DNA of 64,000 nt, from NCBI GenBank assembly GCA_965644495.1, contig CBFFSA010000003.1:310001-374000 (forward strand). Reading direction: 5' to 3'. The DNA is from Perkinsela sp. CCAP 1560/9 (lineage: Eukaryota; Protista; Euglenozoa: Kinetoplastea). A program made the translations under genes and the position numbers. The notes under the pieces were generated by a model, which worked only from the letters and a program-made list of their open reading frames with translations, was not told the origin of the DNA and did not search any database. Below are positions 33,651-61,068 of this stretch, in pieces. Numbering within the stretch: position 1 is the stretch's first letter; the number at the start of each line of letters is the position of its first letter.

Positions 33651-34803
33651 ATTCTTTATAAATAAACCCCCGCTCACGAATAAGTGACCCCCCCTTATTT
33701 TTAGCATAGGGGGGCGTAGGTGGGTTGTCATACCACTTTTTCGTTCAAAATTTCGAGATCTGTACGTTCCCGCTGTTTTTAGCTCATTTTAAAATTTTAA
33801 AATTTAGTCAAAAAAAATAATTGGTTTTTCAGCTTTTTTTTTCAAAAATGACAAAATCACGATATCGGCTCCTAAAAGGGGGGTTTACGGATAGTGGTAA
33901 GGTTCTTTTGAACATGAGACAGGGAGAAGGTGTTCCGATAAAACAATTATCCCGTGATTTTAACGTCTCTAGAAGGATAGTCAAAAAATTTCTGAACGAA
34001 AAAAAATGTAGCGGGGAATACACTTTGAGTCCTGTGACCATTAAAAAAATCGAATCTCGCAAAAAGAAAATTGAAAAGATATTGACTCCTTTCGACCCCG
34101 CTGGGGTACCAAAATTCAATTCTTCAAGGCGTATAAAAGGCCAACTGTGTAAAAAAGGTATACAAGTTTCGCAAAGCACTGTAAAGCGAGATCTAGCATC
34201 GCTGGATTACAATTATGCCGCTCGGCCAGTATGCCAAGGGCTTACCGAACGACAAAAGCAAAAAAGAGTTCAATTTGCTTTGAATTACAAATTGGATACT
34301 GCCCGTGTTATTTTTACGGACGAAAAGATATTTGATACCAACGATAGCAGAAGACACATGTGCGTAAAGCGCGGTCAAAAAGCGGCCCCGCGTCAAAAAG
34401 TACGTTGGGCACCAAGATGCCAAGTTTTGGGTGCTGTAGGAGTGGGGTGGAGGTATTTGGTTACTCTACGAAATGACACATCTATTACAAGTGAGACGTA
34501 CATAGAAACATTAAAACAGGTAGATTTCCCCCCTAATAGTGTATTTCAACAGGATGGGGCAACGGCACACACTGCCCGTGCCTCCAAAGAGTATATTGAG
34601 AATCGAATGAGTGATGTTCTAAGAAACTGGCCTCCCAACTCGCCCGACCTTTCCCCCATAGAAAACGTCTGGTCTATGGTCCAAGAGGCGGTAGACGAAC
34701 AAACGCCACCGGACAAACCTTCACTTATCCGATGTGTACGTAAAGCATGGTCTTCTTTAACTCAAAAAGTGATCGACAAAACAGTATTAAGTTTTGATTT
34801 TCG

Positions 34804-36045
34804 GGTGAAATTAAAGCAAAATTCGCCTTTTTTGAAAAAAAGGAAAGTCGTCCCCACTAAAAATAATTGTATCTTTTTTTGTATCGTATCACGTATTTCC
34901 ACTTTTTCCATTATTTTTCAGATTCATTTTTTAGATTCAGACTCCTCAACTCCAACACATGCCCTGTAAAGGATGCAACGGTTTCGCTTGCCGAGGAAAT
35001 CTCACTTTGAGCAAAGTTTCTGTGTGGAGCGAATCGAAATGCAGGGAGTGGTTAAGAACCCATAAGTTGGTGGCTCAGAAGGTTGTATGTTATAAAAGAC
35101 TACACAAGGCGCCCTATACTATGCACGTCACTGACGGGAAATGGAGGTGTACTAAAAAATGCAAAGGAATGTACGCCACCTTAGGACCTCTCGTACCTGG
35201 AAGGGCACAAAGAAGTGCAAAGCAAACATTAAAGTACATAATTTTGTACGCTCGTGGTGGACGACATGCGGATTCGGCAGCGGAGACAGAACTTAGCCAG
35301 CAGACCATTGTGTCTCTAAGGCAATGGATGGATGGCATGATGGCCACAGCTCATGTTCGCCGACGTATCAGGAATCGCGGCAGCGTTGGTTCAATGCAAT
35401 GCGATGAGACATATTTTTCTGTACGGAAACGTCACCGAGGTTCTCATGGTGCAAGACGGGTGCGAGATGATGGTACAGAAGTTGCACAGACAATTGCTGT
35501 GACTACTCGAGCGAACAAATTATCTGAAATGTTCATGGAAGTTGTACCTGATCGTAAGGCGAGCACGTTACTTCCTCGAATTGAAGATCTGGCGAGCGGG
35601 GGGAGGACACGAATTTGGACCGACGGGGCGCGTCACAATATCTGCCTTGGTGGATGCTATAAGTGGAATAGCGTGAACCACCGCCGAGAATGGATAACAG
35701 AAGAGGGTGTCCACAAGAACACTGTGGAGTGCGCGAATTCGGTGGCGAAGAAGAGACTTAATCGAGAAGGAAACGTATTAGGAAGGAAAAAGGATAAACG
35801 GGCAGATCGTGTGCAAGCCAATGCTGAAAAATGCAACGGCAGCTTACGGTACAATGGCGGCGATGTAATGCTGCGCATCCTACAGAATCTACAAGATCAT
35901 TGTCATTGTATTCATTTATAAGTCTTGTCCAAGTATTTAAGTAGAAAACTAGAAGCGGAAAGTGTTGATTTCATTGCACAAAATTTTTGAAAACCGCAAA
36001 AAAAAACTTTTTTTAAAAAAAGGCGAATTTTGCCTTAATTTAACC
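34804..36045 (+). mobile_element. Merlin (IS1016/IS1595-like) transposon
   Basis: About 39-bp TIR GGT(G/T)AAATTAA(A/G)GCAAAATTCGCCTTTTTT; perfect 8-bp TSD GATTTTCG at 34796-34803 and 36046-36053. Confidence 0.93.
34959..35921 (+). CDS. Merlin DDE transposase
   Basis: Cys-rich N-terminus; QCDETYF..RK..RG; IWTDGA; VNH; GVHKNTVEC. Confidence 0.88.
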   Translation: MPCKGCNGFACRGNLTLSKVSVWSESKCREWLRTHKLVAQKVVCYKRLHKAPYTMHVTDGKWRCTKKCKGMYATLGPLVPGRAQRSAKQTLKYIILYARGGRHADSAAETELSQQTIVSLRQWMDGMMATAHVRRRIRNRGSVGSMQCDETYFSVRKRHRGSHGARRVRDDGTEVAQTIAVTTRANKLSEMFMEVVPDRKASTLLPRIEDLASGGRTRIWTDGARHNICLGGCYKWNSVNHRREWITEEGVHKNTVECANSVAKKRLNREGNVLGRKKDKRADRVQANAEKCNGSLRYNGGDVMLRILQNLQDHCHCIHL

Positions 36046-36608: not shown

Positions 36609-38031
36609 GATGACTTATATTGTAGTCATTTTTCGGAAATTTGCGAAAGTGCATGAAAGGACTATTACTCATTTTTTCGAAATATGAAATGCGGTTTTTC
36701 GATATGCTAGATGTTATTTCCCTATATTTTCCATTCCTTGTCTCAAAAGAAATACAGATCCTGATACAAATACATATCCTGATTGAAGAAATACACCGAT
36801 TTTGATTATAACTGCAATCTTTGTATGAACTTCCAATCTTCATCTTCACTTTCATCAACAAGCGACTCACTAGAGTCTTCTTCTTCTTCTTCTTCTTCTT
36901 CTTCCATTTTGTCGTGTTCAAACTCGCTTTCCACTTCATCTTCTTCCGACTCGCTTTCACTATCACTTTCTGTCCCCATGTCTCGAGCTACTTTAAACGC
37001 ACATAACAGTACTTGTAACTTCTCTTGCCAAGACGGCTTTTTAAAAAATAAGGTAAACAACGCCACCGTCCGCTTAGACTCTCTCAACGACATCGATAAC
37101 CTACCTTGTTTACGTATAGCCCGCTTCACCGCTGAATGACATGACTCCGCGTTGTTGGTGTGAGTTCCATCAGCAGTTACAAACTTAAACTTTCCTTTAC
37201 TAGAATGGTTCACAGTGCGGTGATCGCGAAATGCAATAACGTTCGAGTATCCTTTCCACCCGTCTGTAGTTACTATGGTACGTTGGCTGTCCAATGTGTG
37301 CTTCCTGATCGCCTGCTCCAAGGTTTCCTTATTTCGATTTTTTACGTGTAACCACACCGTGCTTACCGATTTACCGTTCCTTGCAACTTCCGTAAGAGTC
37401 AATACCCACGTTGGTTTCTTACGAGTTCTTCGTCCGCGGTTGTACTTCCGGCTCCATAAATAAGTCTCGTCAACCTGACAACGCGAGTACTGTATCTTGG
37501 AGTTCCGATACTTCATGTACCGATAAACTGCATCTAAGAGCTCTTTTTTCCACGTAAATGCAGTTTTCCGGTCAACTTCGCATTGCGAAGCAATTGAGCT
37601 CATTGGAACACCTTGACACAGTTTTACCCAAAAAGAGAATTTCTGCTTTCTTTTCTTTTGTTTGCAAGACATGTAGGGATACAGCAGTGATAGACGTTTT
37701 CGACAACTCCCCTTCTTCCGTCGTTTCCAGCAAATGTTTTCAAAGCGTCTCGCTGCACACCCTGTACCCCCATGCCTGCGACAAGTTTCGGACTTCACAA
37801 TACCATGGCTTATAAGAAATTTCTCGAATTGCTCGAATGGAATTGGGCCATCGTTTTTCCACTTGAGAACACAACGCATATCCGAGCACGAACAGGAGGC
37901 CATTTAGTGGAAAAAAAAGAAATGAAATAAGCCAAATCTTGTTTCACGCATAAATACAATGTATTCTGAGGGAGATGTCATGTTATATATTTGCTTCTCA
38001 ACGTTTCCCCAAAATGACTACAATATATCAC
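36609..38031 (-). mobile_element. Second Merlin-family element
   Basis: Imperfect TIR TATATTGTAGTCATTTT / AAAATGACTACAATATA; no clear TSD. Confidence 0.7.
36806..37903 (-). CDS. Merlin DDE transposase with acidic C-terminal tail
   Basis: QVDETYLWSRKYNRGR, VKNRNKETL, TTDGWKGY, TVNHS, GTHTNNAES. Confidence 0.9.
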   Translation of the reverse strand: MASCSCSDMRCVLKWKNDGPIPFEQFEKFLISHGIVKSETCRRHGGTGCAARRFENICWKRRKKGSCRKRLSLLYPYMSCKQKKRKQKFSFWVKLCQGVPMSSIASQCEVDRKTAFTWKKELLDAVYRYMKYRNSKIQYSRCQVDETYLWSRKYNRGRRTRKKPTWVLTLTEVARNGKSVSTVWLHVKNRNKETLEQAIRKHTLDSQRTIVTTDGWKGYSNVIAFRDHRTVNHSSKGKFKFVTADGTHTNNAESCHSAVKRAIRKQGRLSMSLRESKRTVALFTLFFKKPSWQEKLQVLLCAFKVARDMGTESDSESESEEDEVESEFEHDKMEEEEEEEEEDSSESLVDESEDEDWKFIQRLQL

Positions 38032-39010: not shown

Positions 39011-39440
39011 TTCGTAAAGACCCGGATCGTCGAAGCCTTGATGACATCGAAGAGTTTGTCTTCGGCACTTGTCTCAGGCTCAAGAGCAGTCAATCGCTCT
39101 TGCAATGCGTCATTGCTCTCGATAGTCATAAAAATTTAGGAGAAAAGTTTACGGGAAAAGAAAAACGCGCTGTTGTTAGTAAAAAGGATGAAAATGATTC
39201 AGACAAAGAAACAAAGGAAAATATAGCTAGAAGCGTACACCGAATTCGAAATTCCACTTAAAAATAAAAACAAATGTAAACTTTTGGCTGTTTTTCTATC
39301 TCTCCCCACCGAAAATACGAACCGCGGTTTCGGTGCGGTCTCGGTCGAAGTACCCGCAGCCCCTCACATGGATATTTTACTATTTCTGATATATCCTTGT
39401 TAGGTTGTTGCTTCTACCACGTTTAAGTTTTTGTGTTACG

Positions 39441-40841
39441 ATGAGATCCCAACGTTTGCGGGCTCCACAGGAGTCGAGCCAGGACCGTGATCGCTCCCCA
39501 AAACGAGACCGGGCACCGACACCGATTGAGACCTCTTCCTTTGCTCGTTCTAAGCGCCAGTCCCTGTCGTGCCCTCCCGTTCGCCCCCCTCTTCCCCCTC
39601 TCCCCACGCAGGCAGCTCCGCAGGTAACCGCGAAACCTACTCAGATTCCCCCTACCCCAGGCCCGGCGCGGCGGAAGGTACGTCCGTCTGGTAGAGCGTT
39701 GAGCCCCGCCCGCGAACCGCCGAGTCCGCTCCCGAGTAATCTCCCCAGTCTTCCTGCAAGCTCCTTTAATAGCCCTTATCCCATTCCACTCGATGCTCCG
39801 GAAGTCCCGATACGTCGCAAGGGAACCTTTAACCCTGACCAGGTTGAGGCTTCCCGCTCACCTCGTCGATACGATGCCCTCGACATTGACCACGTCGAGG
39901 TGCCTCAGCGTTCACGCCTTGATGCCCGAGGAATCATGACCAGCCAAAGCAAGGAAGAGTTTGTCATGAAAGTGATTGACCTTCTGCGCAAACGCTATGA
40001 GGTCACCGTCGAAGCTGTATGGTCTCTTCCCCGAGATGGCCTACGGCAGACGGCTATAGGGCGGGTGCATATGACGCATCCTAATGACCCGGAATCAACT
40101 GAGTTGTTTACAGAATGGGATGGGGACGTGAATACAGCCTACCGTTTTCCCCATCCCGATATCAATTACCACTCCTTGGACCTTGCCCATGTTCGGGCAC
40201 AGATGCCGGGTGGGAAACCAGTTGAAGATTTGATTCCGGCGTTTGAACGCGTCCGTGTTACGGACCCGAAAAGCTTCTACCCCTACGACCCGGTTACTTG
40301 GCAACCGTGGATCGACACGGATGATTTGTTCAAGCCACGTGAACTCATCCGTGAGCTGCGCGAAGCTCCGCAGCTTGGGGTACGCTTCAACCCTCCGCCG
40401 CAGCGTGAGCGCCTGTTCAAAATGTTGACTGAATGGGTTTACGCTGCGCGCAACACAGAGGGTTGGCTAGAGAAGCACAACCTCGCCGTAGCCCTTCTCA
40501 TCATCGAAGAGCTTCGCAACCATTATTGGGCTGCGGCGGGTGTTGCAGTCAAACGAGTGCAACAGCGGTTGCACCGTGACGACGACCCTCAGGACCGTTA
40601 CGGTCAGCTTGTGGTCGACGAGCAACTGAGGGGCCGGACTGCGCAGCGTGCTCCTCGTCGACGCAGCCAGGGACCTTTCTGTTTTGGCTGTCATCAGCCA
40701 GGCCACCTCCGATCGAACTGCCCCCAAGCGTCCCAACAGCAGGGGGGGCAGTTCCGTACCCAATGCGCCCCGCAACAGGATTTTCGCGGCGGGGTGGTGG
40801 GCGGCGCCAACCGTTACGGCGCATCGCGGGCTTTCCACTAG
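39441..40841 (+). CDS. Gag-like protein with CCHC zinc knuckle (element 1)
   Basis: Pro-rich N-terminus; YRFPHPDINY and PYDPVTW shared with element 2; CFGCHQPGHLRSNC. Confidence 0.85.
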   Translation: MRSQRLRAPQESSQDRDRSPKRDRAPTPIETSSFARSKRQSLSCPPVRPPLPPLPTQAAPQVTAKPTQIPPTPGPARRKVRPSGRALSPAREPPSPLPSNLPSLPASSFNSPYPIPLDAPEVPIRRKGTFNPDQVEASRSPRRYDALDIDHVEVPQRSRLDARGIMTSQSKEEFVMKVIDLLRKRYEVTVEAVWSLPRDGLRQTAIGRVHMTHPNDPESTELFTEWDGDVNTAYRFPHPDINYHSLDLAHVRAQMPGGKPVEDLIPAFERVRVTDPKSFYPYDPVTWQPWIDTDDLFKPRELIRELREAPQLGVRFNPPPQRERLFKMLTEWVYAARNTEGWLEKHNLAVALLIIEELRNHYWAAAGVAVKRVQQRLHRDDDPQDRYGQLVVDEQLRGRTAQRAPRRRSQGPFCFGCHQPGHLRSNCPQASQQQGGQFRTQCAPQQDFRGGVVGGANRYGASRAFH

Positions 40842-43702
40842 GAAATGCTCCCCACCCCAGTTACTGCTCGTGCCCGTCGTCCCAGGCGACGACGGGTGGA
40901 TATTCCTACCCCCGCTCCCTCTCCGCTCCTCCGCCAACGAGAAAGGCGGCCACGTGTGCGTGGCAATACTCCTCCTCCGCGCCAGTCCTCGCCAATGCTC
41001 CTCCGTCGCCGCAGTGTCTCCCTCCCGGCTCGTCCTCTCCCCCGAACCCCCGTTCCCGCCAAAACCGCCGCCGCCGCCAAAACCGCCGCCATACAGTCGC
41101 CCGGGAAACGCCGCCAAGAGTTACTGGGGACCATTCTTCAAATGCCCCCCGAGGACCCGCGCGCCACCCAGATGAACGAGGCGCTCCAGCCAATGTGGGC
41201 GACGGCCACGTGGGCCACAAGGGAGCGATTGTGGTTCCGCCTGCGCGAGTATTGCCAGGCGAAGGGAATCACCGCGAATCCTGCAAACGCGGTGCTCTTC
41301 CTGGAGACTCTGCCTCTCGCTACCTCGACGCGCATGGGGTACGCAGGGGCATTGAGGACTCTGTTCGAGCTCATGGGAATCGAAGGCACCCCATTGAGTC
41401 TCTACGTAAAGGCCCTGCAAGCGCAGGGGGGGCTAGAACCCACGCGGCAGATGCTACCAATCACGCCACTTCTTCTAAAGAAGCTGAGACGTCATCTCGA
41501 CGTAAAGGAGAGCATGTGTTGCCTCCTGTGTTGGAAAGCCGCTGCGAGATGGACCGAGACCGCCGACCTGAGGCGGGAGCAGTTCGTGAGTGTGGCCAGT
41601 CACGAGGTAATCATTTATTGGGGCAGGGGGACCAAGACGACCCGTCTGAATCCTTACCGGCCGTACCTCTACGCGATAGTGACTGGCCCGGGGACACCCG
41701 AACTGGCTCAGTTTGTGGGAAGTTTGAGACCAGGCCAGCGCCTGTGTTACACGACGGTCCGGGAGATGGACCACAGGATGAATCAACTTCTCGGTCCCGG
41801 GTATGGAACACATTCCATAAAAAGAGGTGCAATTACATACCTGTTTCACGAGATCTCCCTCGGGAATCTCAGGATGGAGGACGTCCAGAACCTCACGAAA
41901 CACCTCAACGTCGAATCACTGTTGCGCTACAACGCAAGCAGTATTACAACGGCAAGGGCTCTCGGGACGCAGAGAGTCTCAGCACGTCTCCCAGTGCTGT
42001 AACCTCGGAGCACGTGGCAAAGTGCTTCGAGGAAGTGCCTTACCTTCGCAGGCACTCCGTTGTTTGTGCACGCCGCTCTTCACGGCTAGCCAAGGCACAC
42101 GACGCACACCTGCCTTTGCACTTTAAGAAGTCGATACCTGTTATCCATATGGATCAGGTTAAGGAGTGGATGAGCCTTTCAGCTGCCACTCGTTTTCGCA
42201 AGGTAGTGGATGAATTGTTATGGGTACCTAAAGCCCCGTACCCCGAACCTAGTGTGAAAGGTTCGTTGCCTGAGGCGGACGTCCGATTGTTGGAGGACGC
42301 AGGCATAATGTATAAGGTCCCGGCGCACGAGTTGAGAAAGCGCCCATCGATGCGGTTCATGATTCCCTTCACGGTTGTGGAGACCGATGATGAGGGCAAT
42401 CAGCGCAGAAGGTTTATTTCGTGGACACGGGACGACAATGACAGACTTAAATCATATGAACCAAAGGTCCCTTTATATCATCCCTCCAAATACCTTCATA
42501 AGGCGCACGAGCCGATGGCTGTGAAGCGGGACTTCACGTGTGGGTTTTACCAGATTGGTATCCCAAAGAGGGCGCGGCCCAAATTCCGCCTTAGAACGAA
42601 CAGTGGAGACGTGTATGAGATGAACGTCCTCCCGATGGGCCATAGGTGTGCACCGGAGGTTATGCACACGGTTACCGCCGCGATTGCTGGCGAGGCGTCG
42701 ATTTGTTCTCAGCGCTACTCGTTTCACCGAGGCGCTATCGACGTTTATGTTGACGGAGTTCGGTTTGCAGGAACCAACTCCGAGGCCACCACGTACTCTC
42801 AGTTCATCGACGAGCGTTGCGACAAGGCGAACGGTCTTTTCAAAGATCGGGGTCAGCCCCCTGTAGCACAGTACGTGTTTAATGGGGTGGCGTTCGACCA
42901 TAACGCGCATACGGTCTGCCTGGGACCGCGAGTGATCAGGAAACTGCGAGCCGACTCTTTCTTCAACATTTCCTTTGTTGACCTAGAGGCGGTGGTGGGG
43001 CGCCTCATTTATGGCTCCGCAGTTCTCCGACTCAAAATGCCGCGATTTTATTTCGCTTTAAAGGTGGCGCAACGGCGTATCAACTTGTTGAACCGTTGCC
43101 CGAAGTTATGTGACCGTCCGGTCGCACTCCCTGTCGTCACTCGCTCCATGCTAGCAGAGTGGAGAAACGAGTTGCTGGAGAATGTTCCACGGTCTCCACC
43201 TCCCCATCCCGATGTTGTTCCACACAAGCATCGTCTCTACACCGATGCCTCGGTGAAAGGATGGGGAGCGATTATGTATTTAGACAGTGGAGAGGTTTTG
43301 ATTACGGGTGAGGCGTGGCCTGAGTCATCCTCGTATGAGGTGAATCGTGCGGAAGCTGCAGCAGTCCGCTTAGCCCTCGAGAAGTTTTCCGCGCATTGCC
43401 CCCGTGGAACCTGCTTGGATGTTTTTGTTGATAACACCTCCTGTCAGGCTGCACTGAACAGGAGGATCTCCAAGTCAGAGGGGGTTTCAATGGAATTGCG
43501 CGAAGTCCTGCGACTGACAGAGGAGAAAGGTATTTGTGTGAAGGCAGCGTACATATCCACGGATGAGAACCCGGCGGATGCTGTCAGTCGTGGGAAGGAG
43601 GTTGAGAAGGAGAAGGTGGAGACATATAGAGGAACGATCGAGAAATACATTAATCATAATCACAGTGGTAAGGTAGACAGTCATTTTGAGGAAAAACCCT
43701 AG
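40763..43702 (+). CDS. Pol: overprinted linker + reverse transcriptase + RNase H (element 1), -1 frame relative to gag
   Basis: KRDFTCGFYQI, LPMGHRCAPE, YVDG, FNGV; RNase H YTDASVKGWG, NRAEAAAV, VDN, ENPADAVSR. Confidence 0.92.
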   Translation: MRPATGFSRRGGGRRQPLRRIAGFPLGNAPHPSYCSCPSSQATTGGYSYPRSLSAPPPTRKAATCAWQYSSSAPVLANAPPSPQCLPPGSSSPPNPRSRQNRRRRQNRRHTVARETPPRVTGDHSSNAPRGPARHPDERGAPANVGDGHVGHKGAIVVPPARVLPGEGNHRESCKRGALPGDSASRYLDAHGVRRGIEDSVRAHGNRRHPIESLRKGPASAGGARTHAADATNHATSSKEAETSSRRKGEHVLPPVLESRCEMDRDRRPEAGAVRECGQSRGNHLLGQGDQDDPSESLPAVPLRDSDWPGDTRTGSVCGKFETRPAPVLHDGPGDGPQDESTSRSRVWNTFHKKRCNYIPVSRDLPRESQDGGRPEPHETPQRRITVALQRKQYYNGKGSRDAESLSTSPSAVTSEHVAKCFEEVPYLRRHSVVCARRSSRLAKAHDAHLPLHFKKSIPVIHMDQVKEWMSLSAATRFRKVVDELLWVPKAPYPEPSVKGSLPEADVRLLEDAGIMYKVPAHELRKRPSMRFMIPFTVVETDDEGNQRRRFISWTRDDNDRLKSYEPKVPLYHPSKYLHKAHEPMAVKRDFTCGFYQIGIPKRARPKFRLRTNSGDVYEMNVLPMGHRCAPEVMHTVTAAIAGEASICSQRYSFHRGAIDVYVDGVRFAGTNSEATTYSQFIDERCDKANGLFKDRGQPPVAQYVFNGVAFDHNAHTVCLGPRVIRKLRADSFFNISFVDLEAVVGRLIYGSAVLRLKMPRFYFALKVAQRRINLLNRCPKLCDRPVALPVVTRSMLAEWRNELLENVPRSPPPHPDVVPHKHRLYTDASVKGWGAIMYLDSGEVLITGEAWPESSSYEVNRAEAAAVRLALEKFSAHCPRGTCLDVFVDNTSCQAALNRRISKSEGVSMELREVLRLTEEKGICVKAAYISTDENPADAVSRGKEVEKEKVETYRGTIEKYINHNHSGKVDSHFEEKP
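40845..42002 (+). CDS. Tyrosine recombinase (element 1), in frame with gag behind TAG
   Basis: AARWTETADL (R), GTKT (K), HSIKRGA, LTKH, LLRY (Y). Confidence 0.9.
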   Translation: MLPTPVTARARRPRRRRVDIPTPAPSPLLRQRERRPRVRGNTPPPRQSSPMLLRRRSVSLPARPLPRTPVPAKTAAAAKTAAIQSPGKRRQELLGTILQMPPEDPRATQMNEALQPMWATATWATRERLWFRLREYCQAKGITANPANAVLFLETLPLATSTRMGYAGALRTLFELMGIEGTPLSLYVKALQAQGGLEPTRQMLPITPLLLKKLRRHLDVKESMCCLLCWKAAARWTETADLRREQFVSVASHEVIIYWGRGTKTTRLNPYRPYLYAIVTGPGTPELAQFVGSLRPGQRLCYTTVREMDHRMNQLLGPGYGTHSIKRGAITYLFHEISLGNLRMEDVQNLTKHLNVESLLRYNASSITTARALGTQRVSARLPVL

Positions 43703-44918
43703 GGGACAGGATCACCAAATACAAAAAATAAAAAAAAAACAAAGACAAGAAAAAAAGAAAAAAAAACTAAGACAAAAAAAAAAAGAGCGGTCCTGGGGTT
43801 TGGAGGTTGTCCCTATAATTTTGGAAGGTTATGGATGTTAATCGGTTAACAGGCTTTATTCTCACGCCTTGTTTCCTTTTCGGAAGCAAGGTTCCCCAAT
43901 GTGAGGTAAATATGAGTAAAGGTTTCCTTTACTCAACGATTAGCGCCTTAATGTTTTTTGACCGCGTCACTGTTGACACGGCCGTACACCACGCCTAGTT
44001 GCTCCACACTTCTAGGTCCCAAGTTGGTGCATGGGCAGAGGTTGAAAGCGTAACCTGTTTAGCTCGTGTGAGCTTGTAAAGGGCGTGGCAGTGGACTGGT
44101 CATCTATTGCTATCGTTATCCTTTTGTGAGTTCTGGGAAGTTTGAAGCAATCTTACTATGTGAATGGGCATTGCTTTTGTCATTTATATTTGATTGTGTG
44201 ACGTGTGTGTGGGCAGGTTGGCCGAGGGTTCCGGTGGGGGGGAACCCCGTTAACAACGTGACATTGAATGTTTTTGTTCTATGCAGGCGTGTTTCCTTTT
44301 ATCTGTGTTTGTGCGTGTAAATTATCTACGATATGTTTTGGTACAATTTGAGAGTAAGATTGGATTATTCATACTTGTTTATTTATATATGTTTGTTTAT
44401 TCATATATGTTTTCATGTATATGTTTCCAGGGAGCCCCTCGGCGTGGATTTCTAATAGTCCACGTTTTGAAATTTAGCCGAGGGGCTGTTATGTATTTGC
44501 CTGCTGGCCCTTCGGGGCACATAATTTCTTCAAATTATGATTTGTGATCTATAATTACATGGATATTTTACTATTTCTGATATATCCTTGTTAGGTTGTT
44601 GCTTCTACTACGTTTAAGTTTTTGTGCCCACCCACCAAACCCCCAGCCATTTGGCCGAGGGTTCCGGTGGGGGGGAACCCCGTTAACAACGTGACATTGA
44701 ATATTTTTGTTCTATGCAGGCGTGTTTCCTTTTATCTGTGTTTGTGCGTGTGAATTATCTACGATATGTTTTGGTACAATTTGAGAGTAAGATTGGATTA
44801 TTCATACTTGTTTATTTATATATGTTTGTTTATTCATATATGTTTTCATGTATATGTTTCCAGGGAGCCCCTCGGCGTGGATTTCAGATTTTATTCTCGC
44901 TTTACGAACAAAAAAGAA

Positions 44919-47900
44919 ATGGTACTACCGTCTACGAGGGATTTAGTTGCGCGTACTCGGAGCAGCTCTCCGTTAGAAAGTCTACATCGTGAGGAATCGC
45001 AACGCGAAGAACAACGTGAAGATGGAGGTCGAAAAAACCCGTTGAACGTCAATCGTATGCGTGCCATTTGTACTCGAATTCGGGAGTTCCTTATGTTGAT
45101 GCCGGGAGAAAGTCCCGCTCTTGGCATTACCGCGGAGTGGAAACGGAAAGACTCGCCTAATTCAGAGATTCGTAAGACGACGGCAAAAGTTAGCAAGGAA
45201 GGTTTGGACCTATGGGCTCTCTGGGAAAATGAAGCAAGTAAGGAATATCCGTTTCCGCATCCTGACATGAATTATTATGATATTGAAATTGATTCGGAAA
45301 TTAACCAGGAACAAGTGGAAGAGGAAGCCCAAGCGGAGAATGAGATTGGTGAGCACATGGACCCCAATAATTTGGATCCGTACGAGCCCATCACTTTCGA
45401 GGGGCTCAAGCACTTTGGGGCTCAAGCAATCCTCACTGAAGTTGTACAAAAAGCATTGCGCGGCAATGAACCAGTCTTTTTAGGATTCATCGACTTTCAA
45501 AGCGCTTTTCCATCTGTCTCGCATGATACTATAGCAGATGCCTTAGAAGCCTTTTCTGTTCCTCCAATGTTGCGTAGAATGATTTTGGCTACCTACGAAT
45601 CACCCACTGGTCATGTAAAAACAGATTTTGGTTACACAAAAAGTTTTGAAATCTCGTCTGGAGTACTGCAAGGGGACGTGCTTGCACCGTTTCTCTTCAT
45701 TATGTGTCTAGACAGAATTCTGGCTCTGGCAATGAAAAACCCGAATTATGGACTGACTCTGTTTTCTACAGGAACCAAAAGCCGAGGTGTTTCAAAGCTG
45801 CGTATCACTGACGTTGATTACGCAGATGATGTTGTGTTCTTTGCAGCAACGCGTGAAACGCTTCGGGACATGATGATAGCACTTGTCGAGGTAGCAAAAA
45901 ATGCAGGCCTGAAAGTTAATGTTGGTCCTACGAAAACGGCATGGATGGTAATAGGCAGGAAGACAAGCCAAATGCGCTATGAAGACATTAGTCTTCCTGA
46001 ACAAGGTGTTGTACCTAAAGTGGATTCGTATCGCTATCTGGGTCATTTAAAGCATGAAACAAAGAAGCAGCTGACATTCAAGATCGATTGCAGATAACAT
46101 GGAGAGCATTTCATCAATTAAAACCCCTCTGGAATATGCAACTCTCCGTGGCACTACGCCTCAAAATTTTCAACGTATTGGTGTCATCCGTGCTGGTGTA
46201 TGGGGCTGCCTCGCTTGTACCAACTCAACAGGAATTGAATACCATCGACATAGAAGTGAATAAAATGCGTCGGATAGCAACAGGAACGCCGCTCTGGGAT
46301 GGACATAGTCGTACCCCAACGGACGCCCTATACAGAGGTGACCCGCGATTTTCAACAGTTTTGAAAATCAATAGAGCGAAACTAGTAGGTCACCTACTGC
46401 GGCATGATTCTCCTTTTCATCACGTCATGATGTGGGTACCGAGAGACTGTGCACGAATAAAATCACTATCCGAAGCTTGTGCTGACGACATAGGAATTGA
46501 CGTTCTGGACATGCAAGAACGTGCACAAGACAGGATCTCGTGGCGCAATTCTGTTCAAAGCCTATACGCTAAACTGGAGCCAACTGCACGATATAACTAC
46601 AACCAGATTTCCACAGCGAAGAGGGAGAAGGATGTCGCAAAAATCATAGGCTCACAGATGAATTTACTCGAAAAGTGGAAAGCATTACAATTTCAAGAGG
46701 AGGGTGCTGTTTTGTGGCCATATGGCAGTTTTATTCACATTTATTGCGATGGATCTGTTCGAAAATTGAACAACGTTTCCTATGCGGGGGCAGCAGCTGT
46801 TGCCGTCAAAAATGGTAGCATTGGTGCTACCAAAGTAAAGAAATTGATGGGAAGCGCAACATCCATTCGAGCAGAGCTTAAGGCCTTTCTTCTCTCTTTG
46901 TCCATGGGTCAGAATTTCAATGCATTGTTTGTAATACATGTCGATTGTTTGTACATGTCGATTCCGAGTATGTCTGGAAATTTTGGCATTGCCAACGCGT
47001 AGCTTTTCAGCTGGATAATTACGCCGACTTCCCGAATGCAGATATCCTATGTCAAATACAAGAACAAGCGGCCAAAATACTTGAAACATGCGAAATTTTT
47101 GTTGTTAAAGTTAGAGGGCACATAGGCAATCCCATGAACGACTTAGCTGACAAGCTAGCTTCTGAAGTGGCAACAGTAGAAGCAATAACGAACGACGGGC
47201 CATACTTTCAGCTACCTACCCTGCTCAACTGGCAAGGATTAACTAAAACGCCAGCTCGTGAAATAAAATCGGAATGCGGCCACAAATGCAAAGACAAGCG
47301 AGTGTGCCTCCATAAATGCTGCAAGAGACATTTTCCAACAGGCTAGGAAGTCGCGTTTAGTGTTTAATGTTTGAAGTCATGATTGATAGACTCCTCACCA
47401 CTAAGAACAAAGTGGTACATTATTATTATTATATCACTTTCGAGGCATGGATTATGTCGGCGGACAAATTCAAAGTGCGAGATTTGATACGGGAGTTGAA
47501 AGATGCGCCTGAATTCGGTTTACGCATAAATCAATTCTTTGTGGATCGAACCTTTATCAAACAACAAGAACGGAATTTTGAGAACCTTTTCGTAAAGTGG
47601 ATCATCTACGCTCGACAAACCCCGAATTGGAACAAAGGCACATATCTGGAAATCGGTAAAGGTATCATACAACTCTTACGAGACTCATACTGGAAGGCAC
47701 GAAGAATGGATGTGGAAGCGGTGCACCAGAAAATGAGCAAAGATGAACGTCCTCAAGATAAATTTTACCAGCACATTGCAGAGCAGATGGAGGAGCGTAA
47801 CAAGCAGTGGAACAAAAGTGTGTCTATGCGAGGACGGGGACGAGGATTTCGCGGTGGAATGACCAGTTATCGAGGGCGAAGCTACGCTCAGAATGAATTA

Positions 47901-48023
47901 TTATGCTATCATTGTCGTGAACCGGGGCATATGCAACGATTTTGTCCTGCATTGAAGAAAGAACAAGAGAATTTTCGTCGCAGGGTGTCTGGCCCTGCCG
48001 AACAAGGCAGCAAAAGGTATTAG
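44919..48023 (+). pseudogene. Gag of element 2, split by the LINE insertion (44919-45402 + 47446-48023)
   Basis: YPFPHPDMNY, PYEPITFE|AWI rejoined across the TSD; CYHCREPGHMQRFC. Confidence 0.85.
45403..47432 (+). mobile_element. 5'-truncated non-LTR retrotransposon with RT and RNase H, frameshifted
   Basis: 13-bp TSD ATCACTTTCGAGG (45390-45402, 47433-47445); (TAT)n tail; FIDFQSAFPSVSH, GVLQGDVLAPFLF, YADD, YRYLG; RNase H YCDGS, RAELKA, KVRGHIGNPMNDLADKLA. Confidence 0.92.
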
Positions 48024-50791
48024 GAATACCACACCCAAACGGCCAGTATGAAATCTGCAAGAACATCGCGAGGAAACAAGAAACGTTTATTGAACCAGAA
48101 ACCAATCAATCTGCAAGTAACAAACAAGAGGAAGCCAGCAAGCACTTTCGAACGAATCTCGAAACATCGAAAGCTGGATGCACCATGTGTGAAATGCACG
48201 AAAGGCAGACCGCTCTCTTCTATGAAATTGTATGGAGGTACTTTGAGCTTACAAACCAATTGGCATGCAAAGCAGGATTTGCTGAAGCACATGATAGGAA
48301 TAAAAGAAATTACACCTCAAATCAAATACGCCATGGATGCGATGTCCCAGACATGGACGAACAGCACATGGAACACAAGAAGCAGGCTATGGGAAAAATT
48401 GAGCACATTTTGCCAGTGGCGAAACATAGATGTCAATCCGATTCATGCTGTAGCGTTCTTAACACAGCTGCCGATAGCGTTCCAAACAAAGTTGACGTAC
48501 GCCAGGAACTTACAAACATTGCTCAACCTCATGACAGCAAACACACTACCCCTAAAGCTATATTGCCGCGCACTACAAGAACAGGGATCCGAAGAACCAA
48601 TCCACCAAATGAAGCCATTAACACCAGAGCTATTAAAACACACCAGAAGCCGGTTACCTCACCGAGAAAGTCTTGCGCTTCTGCTGTCGTGGAAACCAGC
48701 GGCACGATGGTCCGAAACAGCGGCTCTGACAAGGGACAGATTTGTGGAGGTGAACAATCATCAAGTAGTCATATGGTGGGGGAGAATGACGAAAGCTTCA
48801 CGATAAAATCCTTACCGGCGGTCGATGTACACAGTTGTGACGGGACCCGGTACATCAGAGATAGCAAATTTTGTAAGGACCTTAAAGCGGCACCAACCCT
48901 TGACAGAAACGACAGTAAGACAAATGGACCGTCTTTTAGTCCAAATACTGGGGCCAGGATACGGCACCCATTCAGTGAAACGCGGCGCAGTTACTCATCT
49001 GTTCAAAGAAGTGGCCAAGGGAGAAATATCTTTGGAAACGGTGCAAACGCTAGCCAAGCATCAGGAAGTAAGCTCTCTACTCAGGTACAATGCGGATCCC
49101 ATAACGACAGCGTTGGCCCTCGGAACACAACAAGCCACGCAGAAGCTGCCGACGCATTAGAGGAGGAGCAAGCATACCGCCAGTTTATGCGGGATATCCC
49201 GTATATCAAGACCAAGTATACAATATTACGAACGAGAAGGTCTTCTAAAGTTGCAAGTAAGGTTGACATGAAAATTCCTTTGCATGTAAAACATGGAATT
49301 CCACGTATGGACGTGGATAAAGTATTTGACTTAATGAACAATGAGGCCAAAGAAAGGTATAATAAGTTGTGGAAGATGATATGCTCGACCGAGGGTTCTG
49401 TAAGCGTAGGCAGTCATGGAATTCAGGACAAATCAGTTTCGACTATGTTCTTGTGCGACAGCGATGTGATGAGTTTGATAGAAACGGGCGTTGTGTCCAA
49501 GGTAACGCCGGAAGACCTTACATCACGACCGACCATTCAAATCATTTTACTATTTACTGTTATTGAAACCGATGAGCATGACACACTTGAACGTCGTCGA
49601 TTTATTGCATGGTGTAAGGAGGATAATGAACGATTAAAAGATTTGTACGTCCCGTATGTGCCGTTGCGACATGGATCATACTATCTACATCGGGCTAGTT
49701 ACGAGTTTGGACTAAAGAGAGATCTTGCGTGTGGCTTCTATCAAATACGACTTCCCGAACATGCACGTGCCAAATTTAGGTTCTCAGATAAGGAAGGAGC
49801 GACATACGAATTAAATGTATTGCCCATGGGGCACAGATGTGCCCCAGAACTAATGCACATGATCACAGCTGCTCTCGCAGGCGACCCCAATTACTGCAAC
49901 ACAGAACAAAGCTTTACAACAAGTGCTTTGGATATATACATTGATGGATTTCGGTGTGCAGGGGATTACGATGCAGTCAAGAAGTTCGGAGATTTTGTCG
50001 ATAAAAGGGCAGTTTTCATTGGGGCAAAATATAAGGATGCAGAAGAAGAACCTAAAAAACAATACGTCTTTAATGGCGTGCACTATGATCGTCGTACTGC
50101 GAAAGTTTGTCTGGCGCCAAAAATTATTCATCGGTTATCAAAGGATATCTACTTTGGAATTTCGTATGGACAGTTGGAGTCATCTGTAGGAAGATTACTT
50201 CACGCATCAATGGTTTTGGGGAAATCGATTCCGGAGCATCATTTTACTTTGAAGTTAGTAAGAAGGCGCATTAACGCTTTAAACCGTGATCCAAAACTTT
50301 TGTACGAACTGAGCCCTCTGCCGTATGCCGCTCGGATGGATCTTCAGGAGTGGACTCAAAGTATGGTCCACAACACGCCCATTTACCCTCCCCCACGCCC
50401 CGATACGGTCCCGCACTGCCATACACTTTTTACAGATGCTTCGTCGCACGGGTGGGGAGCGGTGTTGTATTTGGATCATGGACAGGTTGTGATCGCAGGT
50501 GAAAAGTGGCCAGATGACTTTGATTACGAAGTTAATAAAGCAGAAGCAAGAGCTGTTTCGAAAGCTTTTCAAAAATTCGATCAGTACTTTCGGGGAGGTA
50601 CTTGTGTTAAACTATTCGTGGATAACACATCATGCGTGTCTGCAATAAATCGAAAAATTACTTCGTCAGACGGCATAGCAGAAGAGCTGCGAAAGATATT
50701 GGGCTTCTTAAACAGGAAAGACATGGCAGTTGACTGCTCATATGTGCACACATTGAAGAATCCGGCCGATGCACTGAGCCGAGGGCTATGA
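47942..50791 (+). CDS. Pol (overprinted linker + RT + RNase H) of element 2
   Basis: KRDLACGFYQI, LPMGHRCAPE, YIDG, FTDASSHGWG, VDN, NPADALSR. Confidence 0.9.
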   Translation: MSCIEERTREFSSQGVWPCRTRQQKVLGIPHPNGQYEICKNIARKQETFIEPETNQSASNKQEEASKHFRTNLETSKAGCTMCEMHERQTALFYEIVWRYFELTNQLACKAGFAEAHDRNKRNYTSNQIRHGCDVPDMDEQHMEHKKQAMGKIEHILPVAKHRCQSDSCCSVLNTAADSVPNKVDVRQELTNIAQPHDSKHTTPKAILPRTTRTGIRRTNPPNEAINTRAIKTHQKPVTSPRKSCASAVVETSGTMVRNSGSDKGQICGGEQSSSSHMVGENDESFTIKSLPAVDVHSCDGTRYIRDSKFCKDLKAAPTLDRNDSKTNGPSFSPNTGARIRHPFSETRRSYSSVQRSGQGRNIFGNGANASQASGSKLSTQVQCGSHNDSVGPRNTTSHAEAADALEEEQAYRQFMRDIPYIKTKYTILRTRRSSKVASKVDMKIPLHVKHGIPRMDVDKVFDLMNNEAKERYNKLWKMICSTEGSVSVGSHGIQDKSVSTMFLCDSDVMSLIETGVVSKVTPEDLTSRPTIQIILLFTVIETDEHDTLERRRFIAWCKEDNERLKDLYVPYVPLRHGSYYLHRASYEFGLKRDLACGFYQIRLPEHARAKFRFSDKEGATYELNVLPMGHRCAPELMHMITAALAGDPNYCNTEQSFTTSALDIYIDGFRCAGDYDAVKKFGDFVDKRAVFIGAKYKDAEEEPKKQYVFNGVHYDRRTAKVCLAPKIIHRLSKDIYFGISYGQLESSVGRLLHASMVLGKSIPEHHFTLKLVRRRINALNRDPKLLYELSPLPYAARMDLQEWTQSMVHNTPIYPPPRPDTVPHCHTLFTDASSHGWGAVLYLDHGQVVIAGEKWPDDFDYEVNKAEARAVSKAFQKFDQYFRGGTCVKLFVDNTSCVSAINRKITSSDGIAEELRKILGFLNRKDMAVDCSYVHTLKNPADALSRGL
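48048..49160 (+). pseudogene. Tyrosine recombinase of element 2 with a premature TAA at 48804-48806
   Basis: AARWSETAAL, HSVKRGA, AKH, LLRY; stop replaces the residue that is L in RLNPYR of element 1. Confidence 0.85.
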
Positions 50792-51086: not shown

Positions 51087-52196
51087 TTGCTTAACCTGTT
51101 GGAAAAATTTGATGATCTCAGCGCAACCGTTAAAAAGCTTGGCGAGCAGCAGCTAGAACAAGGAAAAGCTATGGATGAGCGGTTACGTGGAATTGAAGCA
51201 AAGAAAATCGTGTCTTTTCGTACGAACGATTCAATTGGATCGCGGCCCCGATCTGATCAATCTAATCCCGCTGAAAGTACACAGCCGACTGAACGAAGAC
51301 TCCCAATTTCTCCTCTGTCTGATGAGATAATTAAACAACGCATTCAAGAGATATCAGATACATTGAAGCTTAATGAAGTGAAGGTAGAGATTTCCTGGTT
51401 TAATACTTCCCAAGGCCCACAGTCGATCGAAATCTGGCGCGGCGAACCTGAAGTACTGGAGGATGTGCACGGAAACCTTACCATGCAGATAGCTTACGAG
51501 AACGGAGCAATTCTTCCTTTACCGAATCAAGGGGTATCGTACACCCGCATTTCAATAACTCCACGAGTACAAGAGACAGAACCGAGTGTAGCAACAGAAA
51601 TATTTCGCATACATGACATTATGACGTGGAACATTTACTTTCAGTCTGCATCCGAGTTTGCGTCCCAAATGCTTCTACAACAGATCCAAGACGAATTAAA
51701 GCTTCCCATAAATCGACCTCAGCACATCGACGAAGCTTGGGAGGCCCTGAAGTTATACGTTCAAGACACCTTTCTTCGGGGTGGAATTGATGCAGTAAAG
51801 AATGCACCCCATGCCCAGAGAGGACAACAAGCGGTAGATCACCTCAGAATTCTCCTAGCCGAACTACGTGGAGGTGACGGACGTTACATCCGAACACAAT
51901 GTCGGATCGACAGAAACCCAAACGATAAACTCGGTAACACTATCGATAAGGCGCTCAATTTTTCGCGATCACGTACTACAAATCGTACTTATGGGTCGTA
52001 TCGAGGCCGAAATTTTAATTATAACACACGTGATGGGAAATACGCACCCAACAACAGTCAGTACGTTCCCCGCGGAAGAGGACAACACAATCATCCTAGC
52101 TATGAACGAGGTCAGTATAATCCATCATACAACCAGACGCAGGTACGAAGTCGATCGCAGGATTTCGATCGACGGGGGCCTGGCGGAAGCAAGTGA
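51087..52196 (+). CDS. Gag-like ORF of element 3 (RG/Y/N-rich tail, no CCHC); start uncertain
   Basis: Position between A1 and YR; weak similarity (LPNQGVSY, DHLRI, RNPNDKLG) to the gags of elements 1 and 2. Confidence 0.7.
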   Translation: MLNLLEKFDDLSATVKKLGEQQLEQGKAMDERLRGIEAKKIVSFRTNDSIGSRPRSDQSNPAESTQPTERRLPISPLSDEIIKQRIQEISDTLKLNEVKVEISWFNTSQGPQSIEIWRGEPEVLEDVHGNLTMQIAYENGAILPLPNQGVSYTRISITPRVQETEPSVATEIFRIHDIMTWNIYFQSASEFASQMLLQQIQDELKLPINRPQHIDEAWEALKLYVQDTFLRGGIDAVKNAPHAQRGQQAVDHLRILLAELRGGDGRYIRTQCRIDRNPNDKLGNTIDKALNFSRSRTTNRTYGSYRGRNFNYNTRDGKYAPNNSQYVPRGRGQHNHPSYERGQYNPSYNQTQVRSRSQDFDRRGPGGSK

Positions 52197-52271
52197 CTAA
52201 ATACAGTCCGCCCCCATGGGAAAAGCCAGTTAAAAAGCGGCATCACGCCGATAGTCAGTACAAAAGTAAGT

Positions 52272-57908: not shown

Positions 57909-60712
57909 TTTACTGACGCATCTATGCAAGGGTGGGGTGCAGTCCTCAATCTTCCCACAGGAGAAGTTTACGCGACAGGAGCACCATGGATAAACCAAAT
58001 GGAAATAAATGCTGGTGAAGCCATTGCGGTGGAACGAGCATTAAATTTATTTCAACATCACTGGCAAAAGTTTAAAAACATCCACCTGCGCATCGACAAC
58101 ACAAGTGTTTTAGCCGCATTACGGAAAAAATGGAGCGACTCCGAAGGAATATCAAGTACATTGAAGCGCCTTATAGAATTTCAAGACCACAACAAGGTAA
58201 ACATAACGCAGTCATACGTGCGAAGCAGAGAGAACTTGGCTGATAGCTGGAGCAGAGAGTTCTACTAAAGTTATATTAGTTTGCATTTCATCTAAAATTG
58301 GTTTTTGATTAATTGTGAGCTGACTATATGATTAGTTTTAAGACATTACTCCATAGATCGGGGGCCGCCGAAATATGGGGAATAGAACGAAAGATGATAC
58401 TTGGGTGCGGATTTTCTTTAAAAAATAATAATATCGAAATTATTATACCTACCAGTATAGTTTTCTTTTCTTTGTCAACGTGCGAAAGGGATATATACTT
58501 GCGATTGGGCCGAAACTAACGAGGACGAATACGAGGATAAAGCCCAAGCTTGAGTATATAGTTAGTGAGAAACTTTCATTGTTTTTGACTATATCATAGA
58601 AGGGCCCATAAATATACCTTTACTAATATACATGAGCTTGTAAAATATGTAAGCACGATATAGTAGCGGGAGATAATCTTTACTATACTGCATAGGAATT
58701 ATTCTATACGATTACCGCCCCATGTATGCATTCCGAGAGAATTATGTAAACTTGTGTTAGTAATTATACTCGGAAAGTCAGGTAATCGTTCAGTTCAAAG
58801 ATATGATTTTATTGAACATTAGAAACCATTTCCATAAGTTAAAAGTTTTCCCACCCACCCACCCACCCAGGGCCGAAACTAACGAGGACGAATACGAGGA
58901 TAAAGCCCAAGCGTGAGTATATAGTTAGTGAGAAACTTTCATTGTTTTTGATTATATCATAGAAGGGCCCATAAATATACCTTTACTAATATACATGAGC
59001 TTATAAAATATGTAAGCACGATATAGTAGCGGGAGATAATCTTTACTATACTGCATAGGAATTATTCTATACGATTACCGCCCCATGTATGCATTCCGAG
59101 AGAATTATAAACGTACAAAAGGGAAGGGACAACCCTTTGTTCGTTTACAACAGACATTATAATGCTTTTTTATTATTAGCAAAATCGACATCGAACTGGC
59201 GTGCGGGATAAAAATTGTATAAGACTTGCGATCGGGTGGTCGCCGCCGAGGCTACCCGTTCGCTAGAGAATATGCAGTTCGATGGAAATATTGTTAATGG
59301 GGTACCCCTTTTTGATTTTAGCATAAGACGCATGTTTTTGCAGAAAAGTGATGATATACTCAGAAGAGATCATAGCAATTTTATCGTACACAAAACAAAC
59401 TTGAAGACATTTAGTTTATTTAGTTTTACGTATTTTAGAGAATATGATCGACGCAGCGAAATTCTTGAAGTCTACGGAAAGAATTTTTCTAGAAGATTAT
59501 ATAGGTTATTGAGATGATTTTATAGCATAGTGATTGTATTTCATATGTTCAAGTTGATATGTAGAATATTGGTTCATACGTTTTCATCTGTGCGTATAGA
59601 TTTTATTCTCGCTTTACGAACAAAAAAGAAAGCCCACCCACCATCCCCCATCCACTCGCCGCCGAGGCTACCCGTTCGCTAGAGAATATGCAGTTCGATG
59701 GAAATATTGTTAATGGGGTACCCCTTTTTGATTTTAGCATAAGACGCATGTTTTTGCAGAAAAGTGATGATATACTCAGAAGAGATCATAGCAATTTTAT
59801 CGTACACAAAACAAACTTGAAGACATTTAGTTTATTTAGTTTTACGTATTTTAGAGAATATGATCGACGAAGCGAAATTCTTTTGAGTCTGTTGATGGGG
59901 GTAAGCAGGATTACTCCCGAGGTACGCGTGGCATTGGACGCGATGTCCGGAATGTGGAGCTCGTCGACGTGGGAAACACGAGCAAGGTTGTGGGAAAGGT
60001 TCCTGGTATATTGCACCGGGAATCATATAAGACAGACACCCCTTCACGCAGTGACGTTCGTGCAACTTCTGCCAGTGTCAATACAAACCAAGGTGTCCTA
60101 CGGAAGGGCGCTAATGACCTTATTCAACCTGATCGGATTAAATACTGTCCCAATAAAATTCTTTTGCAAAGCTCTTCAGGGACAAGGAGCAGAGGAGCCA
60201 GTACATCAGATGCAGCCGTTGACACCATTCCTACTGAACAAGATACGAAGAAGGTGCACCCAATCCGAAAGTCAAACATTGCTAATGTGCTGGAAGGCAG
60301 CATCCCGTTGGTCCGAAACCGCCAATTTGACCAAGGACAAATTCGTGGAAATATCACCGCAAAAGATTGTAATTGCTTGGGGAAGGGGGACAAAGGCTAC
60401 AAGGTGCAACCCGTGGCGCGAATCGATGTACACAGTCATCCAGGGCCAGGGCACAATCGAATTGGCTCAATACGTACGTACGCTCAGGTCATGGGATCGA
60501 ATGTGCCGGACAAATGTGAGAGAGATGGACAGGAATATAAAGAGGGTGCTGGGAGAGGGTTTCGGCACACATTCCGCCAAGAGAGGGGCGGTAACGCAAT
60601 TATTCCAGGAAGTTGTCAAGGGGACAGTGGGAATCGAAGATGTGAAAAAATTAGCGAAGCACCAGCAAATCGAGTCCCTGTTGCGTTACAATTCAAACCC
60701 AGTTACCACCGC

Positions 60713-61068
60713 CAGTTACCACCGAGACATTGCAGCGTGAGAATGACACCGCCCGGTACCGGATATAACAAGGTACTAAGGAACTAGGGTGGGTGTCATT
60801 CAGCATAATCTTTGGAATGTGTTGTGTTTTTTCACTTCAAAAGAAGTGTTTTTTTAAGAAGAAGATAATAGAATAAAGAATATTTTCTTGTAGCATATAA
60901 AAGGAGTTAAAAAAGATAAGCTGGCTGCTCGCGCTCGATCTGGTCAAATCTTCGGATTTGACTTGCGTGCTGCGTGGCACAGCTCCTAGCAAGCGATAAG
61001 GGGGGGCTTGTCCTAGGGAGGTAACATCTCCTCGGAGATATATTGCCTAAAAATCATCAAATCATCAT
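60713..61068 (+). mobile_element. Short structured SINE-like insertion (family A, copy 4) in the YR/pol overlap
   Basis: 13-bp TSD CAGTTACCACCGC (60700-60712, 61069-61081); hairpin 60741-60801; 3' stem-loop; (ATC)n-like tail; removal restores YNSNPVTT|ALALGT. Confidence 0.9.

Follow-up and report, generated by a model that had tools for sequence, protein, structure and literature searches.

A pseudoknotted RNA cassette at the gag stop codon of VIPER-like tyrosine recombinase retrotransposons from a euglenozoan: a predicted -1 frameshift into pol and putative readthrough into the recombinase gene

Retrotransposons with a gene for tyrosine recombinase (YR), among them VIPER, DIRS and their kin, carry YR and reverse transcriptase (RT) genes that overlap, an arrangement that has been on record for two decades as an oddity. 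To our knowledge, the expression of these overlapping genes has never been explained. We examined three such elements, A, B and C, in a 64,000-nucleotide stretch of the genome of Perkinsela sp. CCAP 1560/9 (assembly GCA_965644495.1, contig CBFFSA010000003.1, positions 310,001 to 374,000). This stretch is referred to as the window; its first letter is position 1, and the parts of elements A, B and C lie on the + strand. At the 3' end of gag, each element carries a compact cassette in which a slippery heptamer precedes a branched, pseudoknotted RNA fold that takes in the gag stop codon. The cassette very probably directs a -1 frameshift into pol and, with less assurance, may also lead to readthrough into the YR gene.

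VIPER of Trypanosoma cruzi resembles the window elements in its order of genes (gag-like, YR, RT/RNase H), in having no methyltransferase and in the CCHC knuckle of its gag. Its consensus has ORF1 at 169-1509, YR at 1510-2517 and RT/RNase H at 1386-4214 (PMC5146736), and these coordinates imply the identical frame plan, with YR directly past the ORF1 stop and in frame with ORF1, and RT/RNase H in the -1 frame overlapping the end of ORF1. A slippery site, an RNA structure, a frameshift and readthrough are undescribed for VIPER in the accessible papers, and all are predicted here, from sequence, for the window elements. An initial annotation of the window, made from its letters alone, knew of no such signal in YR retroelements, and the accessible literature agrees: no recoding signal appears in the VIPER paper (PMC5146736), in a 2019 survey of VIPER and TATE (PMC6681497) or in an overview of DIRS1 (PMC3266345), and Lorenzi et al. 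2006 may itself remark on the frames. A 2016 review of frameshifting leaves YR retroelements unmentioned (PMC5009743). DIRS1-like elements have an extensive overlap of the YR and RT open reading frames (ORFs), as here, and its expression is likewise unexplained (PMC3266345). They differ in their inverted terminal repeats, internal complementary region and methyltransferase domain, and none is reported to have a recoding cassette. In the pol of the window elements, Pfam finds RT and RNase H alone and no methyltransferase domain, and the ORF ends about 80 residues past the RNase H.

Described recoding signals share individual parts with the cassette. In murine leukemia virus (MuLV), gag ends in UAG-G, a C/G-rich pseudoknot follows about 8 nt later, and readthrough produces a Gag fusion protein. 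The UAG-G stop and the nearby structured region resemble the cassette, but in MuLV the whole pseudoknot is 3' of the stop and pol shares the frame of gag, whereas here the 5' strands of the fold lie upstream of the stop. Moreover, readthrough in MuLV gives Gag-Pol, whereas here it would give a Gag-recombinase fusion, with pol reached by frameshift. The -1 programmed ribosomal frameshifting (PRF) sites of umbraviruses and dianthoviruses (GGAUUUU) and of luteoviruses and poleroviruses (GGGUUUU, GGGAAAC) have heptamers identical to those found here, a similar spacer and a required downstream structure (PMC4737148; PMC5009743). These sites serve RNA-virus polymerase genes and are stimulated by compact pseudoknots or by hairpins that have long-distance partners; unlike these, the fold here is a three-way junction with the 0-frame stop inside it. 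The stimulator of the IS911 -1 frameshift is also a three-way junction 3' of the slippery site (PMC5009743), and IS911 shares with the cassette a branched structure with stem-loops downstream of that site, but it is a bacterial DDE insertion sequence that has neither a crossing helix nor a readthrough branch. The cassette would add a further form to the recoding mechanisms already known, in a retroelement class for which the accessible literature describes no expression strategy.

The three window elements are arranged in tandem and are strongly diverged, and each has the order gag-like, YR, RT/RNase H. In all three, the YR ORF follows directly on a lone gag stop and keeps the gag frame. The RT/RNase H (pol) frame is -1 relative to gag and is open through the entire YR ORF, beginning at 40580 in A, 47921 in B and 52121 in C. 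In element A, the gag-like ORF (39405..40841) has a CX2CX4HX4C zinc knuckle in its translation and ends with TAG at 40839-40841; a single TAG thus lies between it and the YR ORF (40842..42002), and the pol frame runs over 40580..43702. The CCHC knuckle of the gag proteins lies a few codons 5' of the heptamer. The YR of element C matches Pfam PF00589 (Phage_integrase). Those of A and B went unrecognized in the Pfam search, and their second ORFs are assigned as YR because they are homologous to the YR of element C.

In element A, the heptamer G_GAU_UUU (40778-40784; codons GAT TTT of the gag frame) is followed by a spacer (40785-40790) and by GGGGTGG (40791-40797), which is complementary to CCACCCC (40852-40858). 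The first helix, S1, is formed by GGGGUG (40791..40796), which starts 6 nt past the heptamer, and CACCCC (40853..40858), 11 nt past the stop. The second helix, S2, pairs GUGGGCG (40797..40803) with UGCUCGU (40865..40871), partly via G-U pairs, and closes the pseudoknot. In the minimum free energy (MFE) fold, the region 40804..40849 is taken up by two inner hairpins, H1 (about 40801-40827) and H2 (40829-40849), with the gag UAG in the apical loop of H2, closed by TTTCC/GGAAA. A 10-bp hairpin, H3 (40872..40897), directly abuts S2 and is a homologous helix in the alignment described below. The cassette of element B (47969..48046) consists of the heptamer G_AAU_UUU (47969-47975), S1 (GGGTGT 47983-47988 with ACACCC 48031-48036), S2 (CUGGCC 47989-47994 with GGCCAG 48041-48046) and the hairpins H1 (47995-48010) and H2 (48016-48030), and its gag TAG (48021-48023) sits at the tip of a GGTATT/AATACC hairpin. 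That of element C (52160..52229) consists of the heptamer G_GAU_UUC (GGATTTC, 52160-52166), S1 (GGGGGC 52174-52179 with GCCCCC 52210-52215) and S2 (CUGGC 52180-52184 with GCCAG 52225-52229); the gag TGA (52194-52196) lies beside GACT/AGTC in the context UGA-CUA. Across the three sites, the spacer between heptamer and stem measures 6-7 nt, and the heptamers fit an in-frame N_NNU_UUY. Every coordinate and sequence detail that the initial annotation gave for the heptamers, strands, stops and hairpins of A, B and C proved correct, as did its placing of pol in an open -1 frame and of YR in the gag frame behind a single stop.

The genome of 21 Mb contains hundreds of element copies, in families with RT proteins 95%, 75% and 46-57% identical to those of elements A and B. 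Among the loci fetched from it, the cassette is present in 15 distinct, diverged junction types or families (denoted here by W for window copies and by L numbers), with RT proteins only 46-57% identical. Common to the 15 families is a fixed order of heptamer, 5-7 nt spacer, GGGGUG and then (A/G)CGAGC, one or two hairpins and the gag stop, followed on the 3' side by CACCCC, a short A/U-rich linker, GCUCGU and another hairpin. The heptamers, all in frame, are GGAUUUU, GGUUUUU, GGGUUUU, GGGUUUC, GGUUUUC, GAUUUUU, GAAUUUU and GGAUUUC. A covariance model of the cassette found at least 139 genomic matches, including window 40778-40919 and 47969-48095. Many of the matches lie 200-330 nt 5' of independent YR protein matches, and the cassettes stood just 5' of YR ORFs wherever this was cross-checked. 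For the WB-like and WC-like clades, most of the sample consists of window copies and covariance-model matches.

Six external lineages from metagenome or run assemblies (L064/66, L067, L068, L069, L071 and L072) keep the frame plan and the architecture, built from different primary sequence, and bring the total to 21 lineages. Their heptamers are G_GGA_AAC (twice), A_AAA_AAU, G_GGU_UUU and G_GAU_UUU (twice). The recurrence that the initial annotation saw in three elements is thereby extended to 15 genome families and six external lineages, which speaks against chance. Two further loci are incomplete: L065 is a 5'-truncated copy without the junction, and L070, from Diplonema papillatum, is fragmentary. 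The named relatives by RT are Papus ankaliazontas, a prokinetoplastid, and D. papillatum; a word-based search for RT relatives recovered no named trypanosomatid sequence, the distance being too great. A metagenome scan by protein pattern returned one locus only, the same element as L064. At L070 (JAPJBO010000842.1), a gene of 1221 amino acids (KAJ9446256.1) has been modelled with introns over two fragmentary copies of a related element, and the ORF pattern recurs about 7 kb apart; this gene model is probably an artefact.

The cassette spans 120-170 nt. MFE folds give a three-way junction in which S1 closes H1 and H2 in A, B, C, most families, L064, L069, L071 and L072, with the gag stop in or beside the H2 loop; in L067 and L068, S1 instead closes a single stop-bearing hairpin or loop. 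S2 is formed by the bases right 3' of the S1 5' strand and a stretch 4-9 nt past the S1 3' strand. It thus crosses S1 to make a pseudoknot, with H3 directly 3' of it, and the interleaved order (S1a-S2a-S1b-S2b) is found in 18 of the 21 lineages, with base-pair conservation in both helices. The loop from S2a to S1b is unusually large (about 30-70 nt) and contains H1 and H2. RNAalifold, which cannot draw S1 and S2 together, selected S2 by itself.

Covariation analysis, which the initial annotation had put forward as a check, was carried out on MAFFT alignments. The alignments were not fitted to structure, and the controls were pairings with the partner slid by 1-3 columns and 500 shuffles. For S1 and S2, 96.2% of cells were paired, compared with 38-59% in the slid controls, and no shuffle (0/500) reached the covariation score; for all five helices the figures were 91.8%, 39-52% and again 0/500. 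Compensatory changes, altering both sides, occurred in 11 of the 31 pairs of the five helices and in four of the seven S2 pairs. In S2 they include C-G to U-A in the clade of L047, L054 and L059 and G-C to A-U in L046, and the seventh pair may be G-C, A-U, C-G or G-U. Elsewhere S2 is wholly replaced, by CUGGC/GCCAG (B, C), GUCGGG/CCCGAC (L064) or GACGGC/GCC(A)GUC (L071). S1 is invariant in the main clade and is replaced outside it: GGGUGU/ACACCC (B), GGGGGC/GCCCCC (C), GCGGCC/GGCCGC (L064), GGGGGA/UCCCCC (L067), GGCCGGC/GCCGGCC (L068), CGGAGG/CCUCUG (L069) and CGGGACG/CGUCCCG (L071). The two helices change jointly in WB, WC, L064 and L071. Independent replacements of this kind support S1, and covariation supports S2 and the hairpins. 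Some results weigh against the fold: S2 was not found in L067 or L069, four of the seven S2 pairs in element A are G-U, single-sequence folding z-scores are modest (-0.03 to -3.7), and in GC-rich families about 10% of shuffles reach the pseudoknot score.

Downstream of S2, the conserved GGGUG is accounted for by its place at the base of H3. As a candidate readthrough stem, the pairing of the C-rich strand with GGGUG was rejected, since GGGUG pairs with GCCC as the H3 base and is absent from L035, L047, L054, L059, WB, WC and the external lineages. In L051, L052 and L061, the H3 module (GC(A/U)CGUGCCC ... GCGGCGGGUGAAC) is tandemly duplicated about 60-110 nt past the gag stop. The bases that form S1b, S2b and H3 also encode, just past the stop in the YR frame, a conserved basic motif, PTP..ARARPLKKRRV (window 40845-40900; L051, L053 and others), which resembles a nuclear localisation signal.

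The -1 frameshift at the cassette is very probable. In 21 of 21 lineages the heptamer lies in the gag frame and permits A-site re-pairing (U_UUY, A_AAC or A_AAU). Ten lineages have a canonical X_XXY_YYZ (GGGUUUU, GGGUUUC, GGGAAAC, AAAAAAU) and the rest are of the GGAUUUU type, itself a documented -1 PRF heptamer (PMC4737148). In 19 lineages the spacer measures 5-7 nt; in L069 it is 4-8 nt, depending on register. The -1 frame is open for 900-1100 codons from an upstream stop 3-200 nt 5' of the heptamer, and in many lineages it contains no ATG for 180-1160 nt past the heptamer. In L068 a UAA closes the -1 frame directly 5' of GGGAAAC, so the shift is possible only at that heptamer. When the YR protein was held fixed and synonymous codons were shuffled, the -1 frame over the YR ORF contained no stops in 18 of 18 lineages, compared with 6-19 expected, and in each lineage none of 500 shuffles matched. 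It is this combination of heptamer type, frame, spacing, covarying 3' structure and an open -1 ORF without its own start that argues strongly for the frameshift. Against it stands the poor P-site re-pairing of several heptamers (GAU, AAU, AUU). The part of pol that overlaps YR (40842-42002 in element A, and its equivalents) comprises 380-430 codons and is of low complexity, and its protein sequence drifts freely. Between related families, substitutions in the overlap are distributed over YR codon positions as 0.22/0.13/0.52; changes therefore fall on YR third positions, and the pol frame there is merely kept open, not conserved as protein. The overlap has the look of an overprinted spacer, not of a domain, as would be expected of a stretch that ribosomes must cross to reach RT.

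On balance, and with some hesitation, we favor a reading in which these are VIPER-like YR retrotransposons of a euglenozoan whose full-length mRNA is decoded three ways at the 3' end of gag. Sequence anatomy, conservation, covariation and reading-frame constraints were observed directly; that slippage and readthrough take place, and how often, is inference. Ribosomes would meet the slippery heptamer with the pseudoknotted three-way junction 5-7 nt downstream, and a fraction would slip into the -1 frame, cross the YR region, where about 380-430 poorly conserved codons serve as a spacer, and produce Gag-RT/RNase H. Ribosomes that do not slip would melt the fold and reach the gag stop, 25-88 nt past the heptamer inside H2, where most would terminate to give Gag; a fraction would read through the UAG-G or UGA-C stop into the same-frame YR and yield Gag-YR. 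Of the two events that the initial annotation had proposed, the comparative evidence strongly supports the frameshift, and readthrough fits the data with modest statistical support. Its further idea of one structure of about 80 nt steering both events is not substantiated: the element is longer and pseudoknotted, and in lineages with a short loop S1 is unable to stimulate readthrough. The stronger proposal, that a single compact RNA module couples -1 frameshifting to readthrough and sets the ratios of Gag, Gag-Pol and Gag-YR, as an ancient and widespread strategy of euglenozoan YR elements and the first of its kind, is put forward tentatively and may well prove wrong. Under that proposal, the sole reason for the 1.1-kb overlap of YR and pol would be that ribosomes have to pass through YR on the way from gag to pol.

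Readthrough of the gag stop into YR is, by our estimate, reasonably probable. A single stop separates gag from YR, in a shared frame, in 21 of 21 lineages. UAG-G and UGA-C are classic leaky stop contexts. Here the 14 UAG families (16 copies read) all have G as the next base, and six of the seven UGA lineages have C (UGA-CUA, -CUC, -CUC, -CUU, -CUG and -CGA), with UGA-A in L072, a regularity that termination alone leaves unexplained. The competing account, which we regard as rather unlikely, accepts the frameshift but has YR made by reinitiation near the stop, by internal or non-AUG initiation or from a separate trans-spliced mRNA, the shared frame being an inherited accident locked by pol. It has to contend with a YR start codon that is not conserved. 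In most lineages the YR frame has its first ATG 50-130 codons past the stop, and in five (L072, L045, L055, L052 and L061) that ATG is inside a conserved recombinase block; no start codon is near the gag stop in the external lineages, and frame 0 is stop-free up to the first ATG in all 21 lineages, whereas the third frame has 0-8 stops per lineage. Several observations weigh on the other side, against readthrough. An ATG stands two codons past the stop in four families (WA, L035, L039 and L046), an arrangement that reinitiation could use as well; in others, near-cognate codons (UUG, GUG, ACG) occupy that place. With the pol protein held fixed, frame 0 before the first ATG is open only weakly beyond expectation (sum of log10 P = -4.2 over 18 partly related lineages), and substitutions in this segment are flat over codon positions (0.33/0.33/0.38), with no signature of protein constraint. 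Because the pol ORF spans both genes and forbids frame-changing indels, the frame relation of gag and YR may be inherited and not selected. The S1 3' strand begins 6-16 nt past the stop and is followed by H3, with the S1 and S2 partners upstream of the stop; in the short-loop lineages (C, L067 and L068) the S1 5' strand would be inside the ribosome with the stop in the A site, which rules out the frameshift stem as the stimulator of readthrough in those lineages. Also in line with the competing account are pyrimidine-rich tracts 3' of the stop in some lineages and the spliced-leader words of euglenozoan type in the host. Among the sequencing runs searched, no RNA run contained the element, and the one candidate RNA run yielded nothing.

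Trans-splicing of polycistronic transcripts is the rule in the host group, which also lends itself to a reading without any recoding, in which the fold serves packaging, dimerisation, processing or trans-splicing, and YR and RT/RNase H come from their own processed mRNAs. The mention of VIPER copies in T. cruzi whose third ORF is shorter and free of overlap (PMC5146736) would agree with it. We nevertheless consider it improbable, as it leaves unexplained the presence of a suitable in-frame heptamer 5-7 nt before the fold in 21 of 21 lineages, the opening of the -1 frame just 5' of that heptamer, and the persistence of about 400 stop-free -1 codons 5' of the RT domain in 18 of 18 lineages despite free amino-acid drift. 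That the pairing reflects chance, or was simply inherited with G/C-rich coding sequence and does nothing as RNA, is less credible still, to the point of being very nearly negligible. Single-sequence folding energies only modestly better than those of shuffles, and the pseudoknot scores of shuffled GC-rich families, would fit it. It is opposed by compensatory changes in all five helices at a level that no shuffle reached, by the six external lineages that rebuild the architecture from different sequences, and by the conservation of S1 and S2 strand nucleotides across families with about 50% identity between their RT proteins.

Spliced-leader-like words (ACAGTTTCTGTAC[C/T]TTGTTG) were seen at window 9427-9446 and in L031, L032 and L033 (near position 1500), where they are preceded by CGATAAAGAT. 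They are scattered in the genome and do not form a tandem array, and they look like relics of retroposed trans-spliced RNAs; YR-element proteins were not found downstream of those in L031-L033 or at window 9427. A fourth YR element in the window, at 59630-62779 (YR 59688-60740, RT 61043-62779), shares about 50% identity with B. A 5' truncation near 59630, apparently within the cassette, has left it without gag and heptamer, and it begins with a GCCCACCCACC-like stretch. Just 3' of the element A pol stop, at 43679-43800, summed contig depth in DNA run X1 is about 20-fold above that of the element body, with A-rich loose ends; this is a repeat of far greater abundance, and it may be a short, non-autonomous form derived from the element end. 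Other mobile elements near the YR elements (33821-34969, 36806-37903, 44766-46097 and 7144-8100) comprise a Tc1/mariner-type DDE_3 transposase, an IS1595/ISXO2-like DDE transposase and RTs of another kind (RVT_1, zf-RVT). In an ORF at 4082-5707 on the - strand, a D-Ala-D-Ala-ligase C-terminal (ATP-grasp) domain and a SET domain occur together, an unusual pairing.

The frameshift cassette would account for the overlap of YR and pol: pol would be entered only from gag and would therefore have to stay open across YR. We know of very few -1 frameshift or readthrough signals in euglenozoans, and the cassettes, if they act as predicted, would be natural examples of both working on euglenozoan ribosomes. 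Should readthrough also hold true, they would join two recoding mechanisms on one RNA element, a rare situation, with ribosomes split three ways. The cassette families offer a ready set of natural compensatory variants for experiments.

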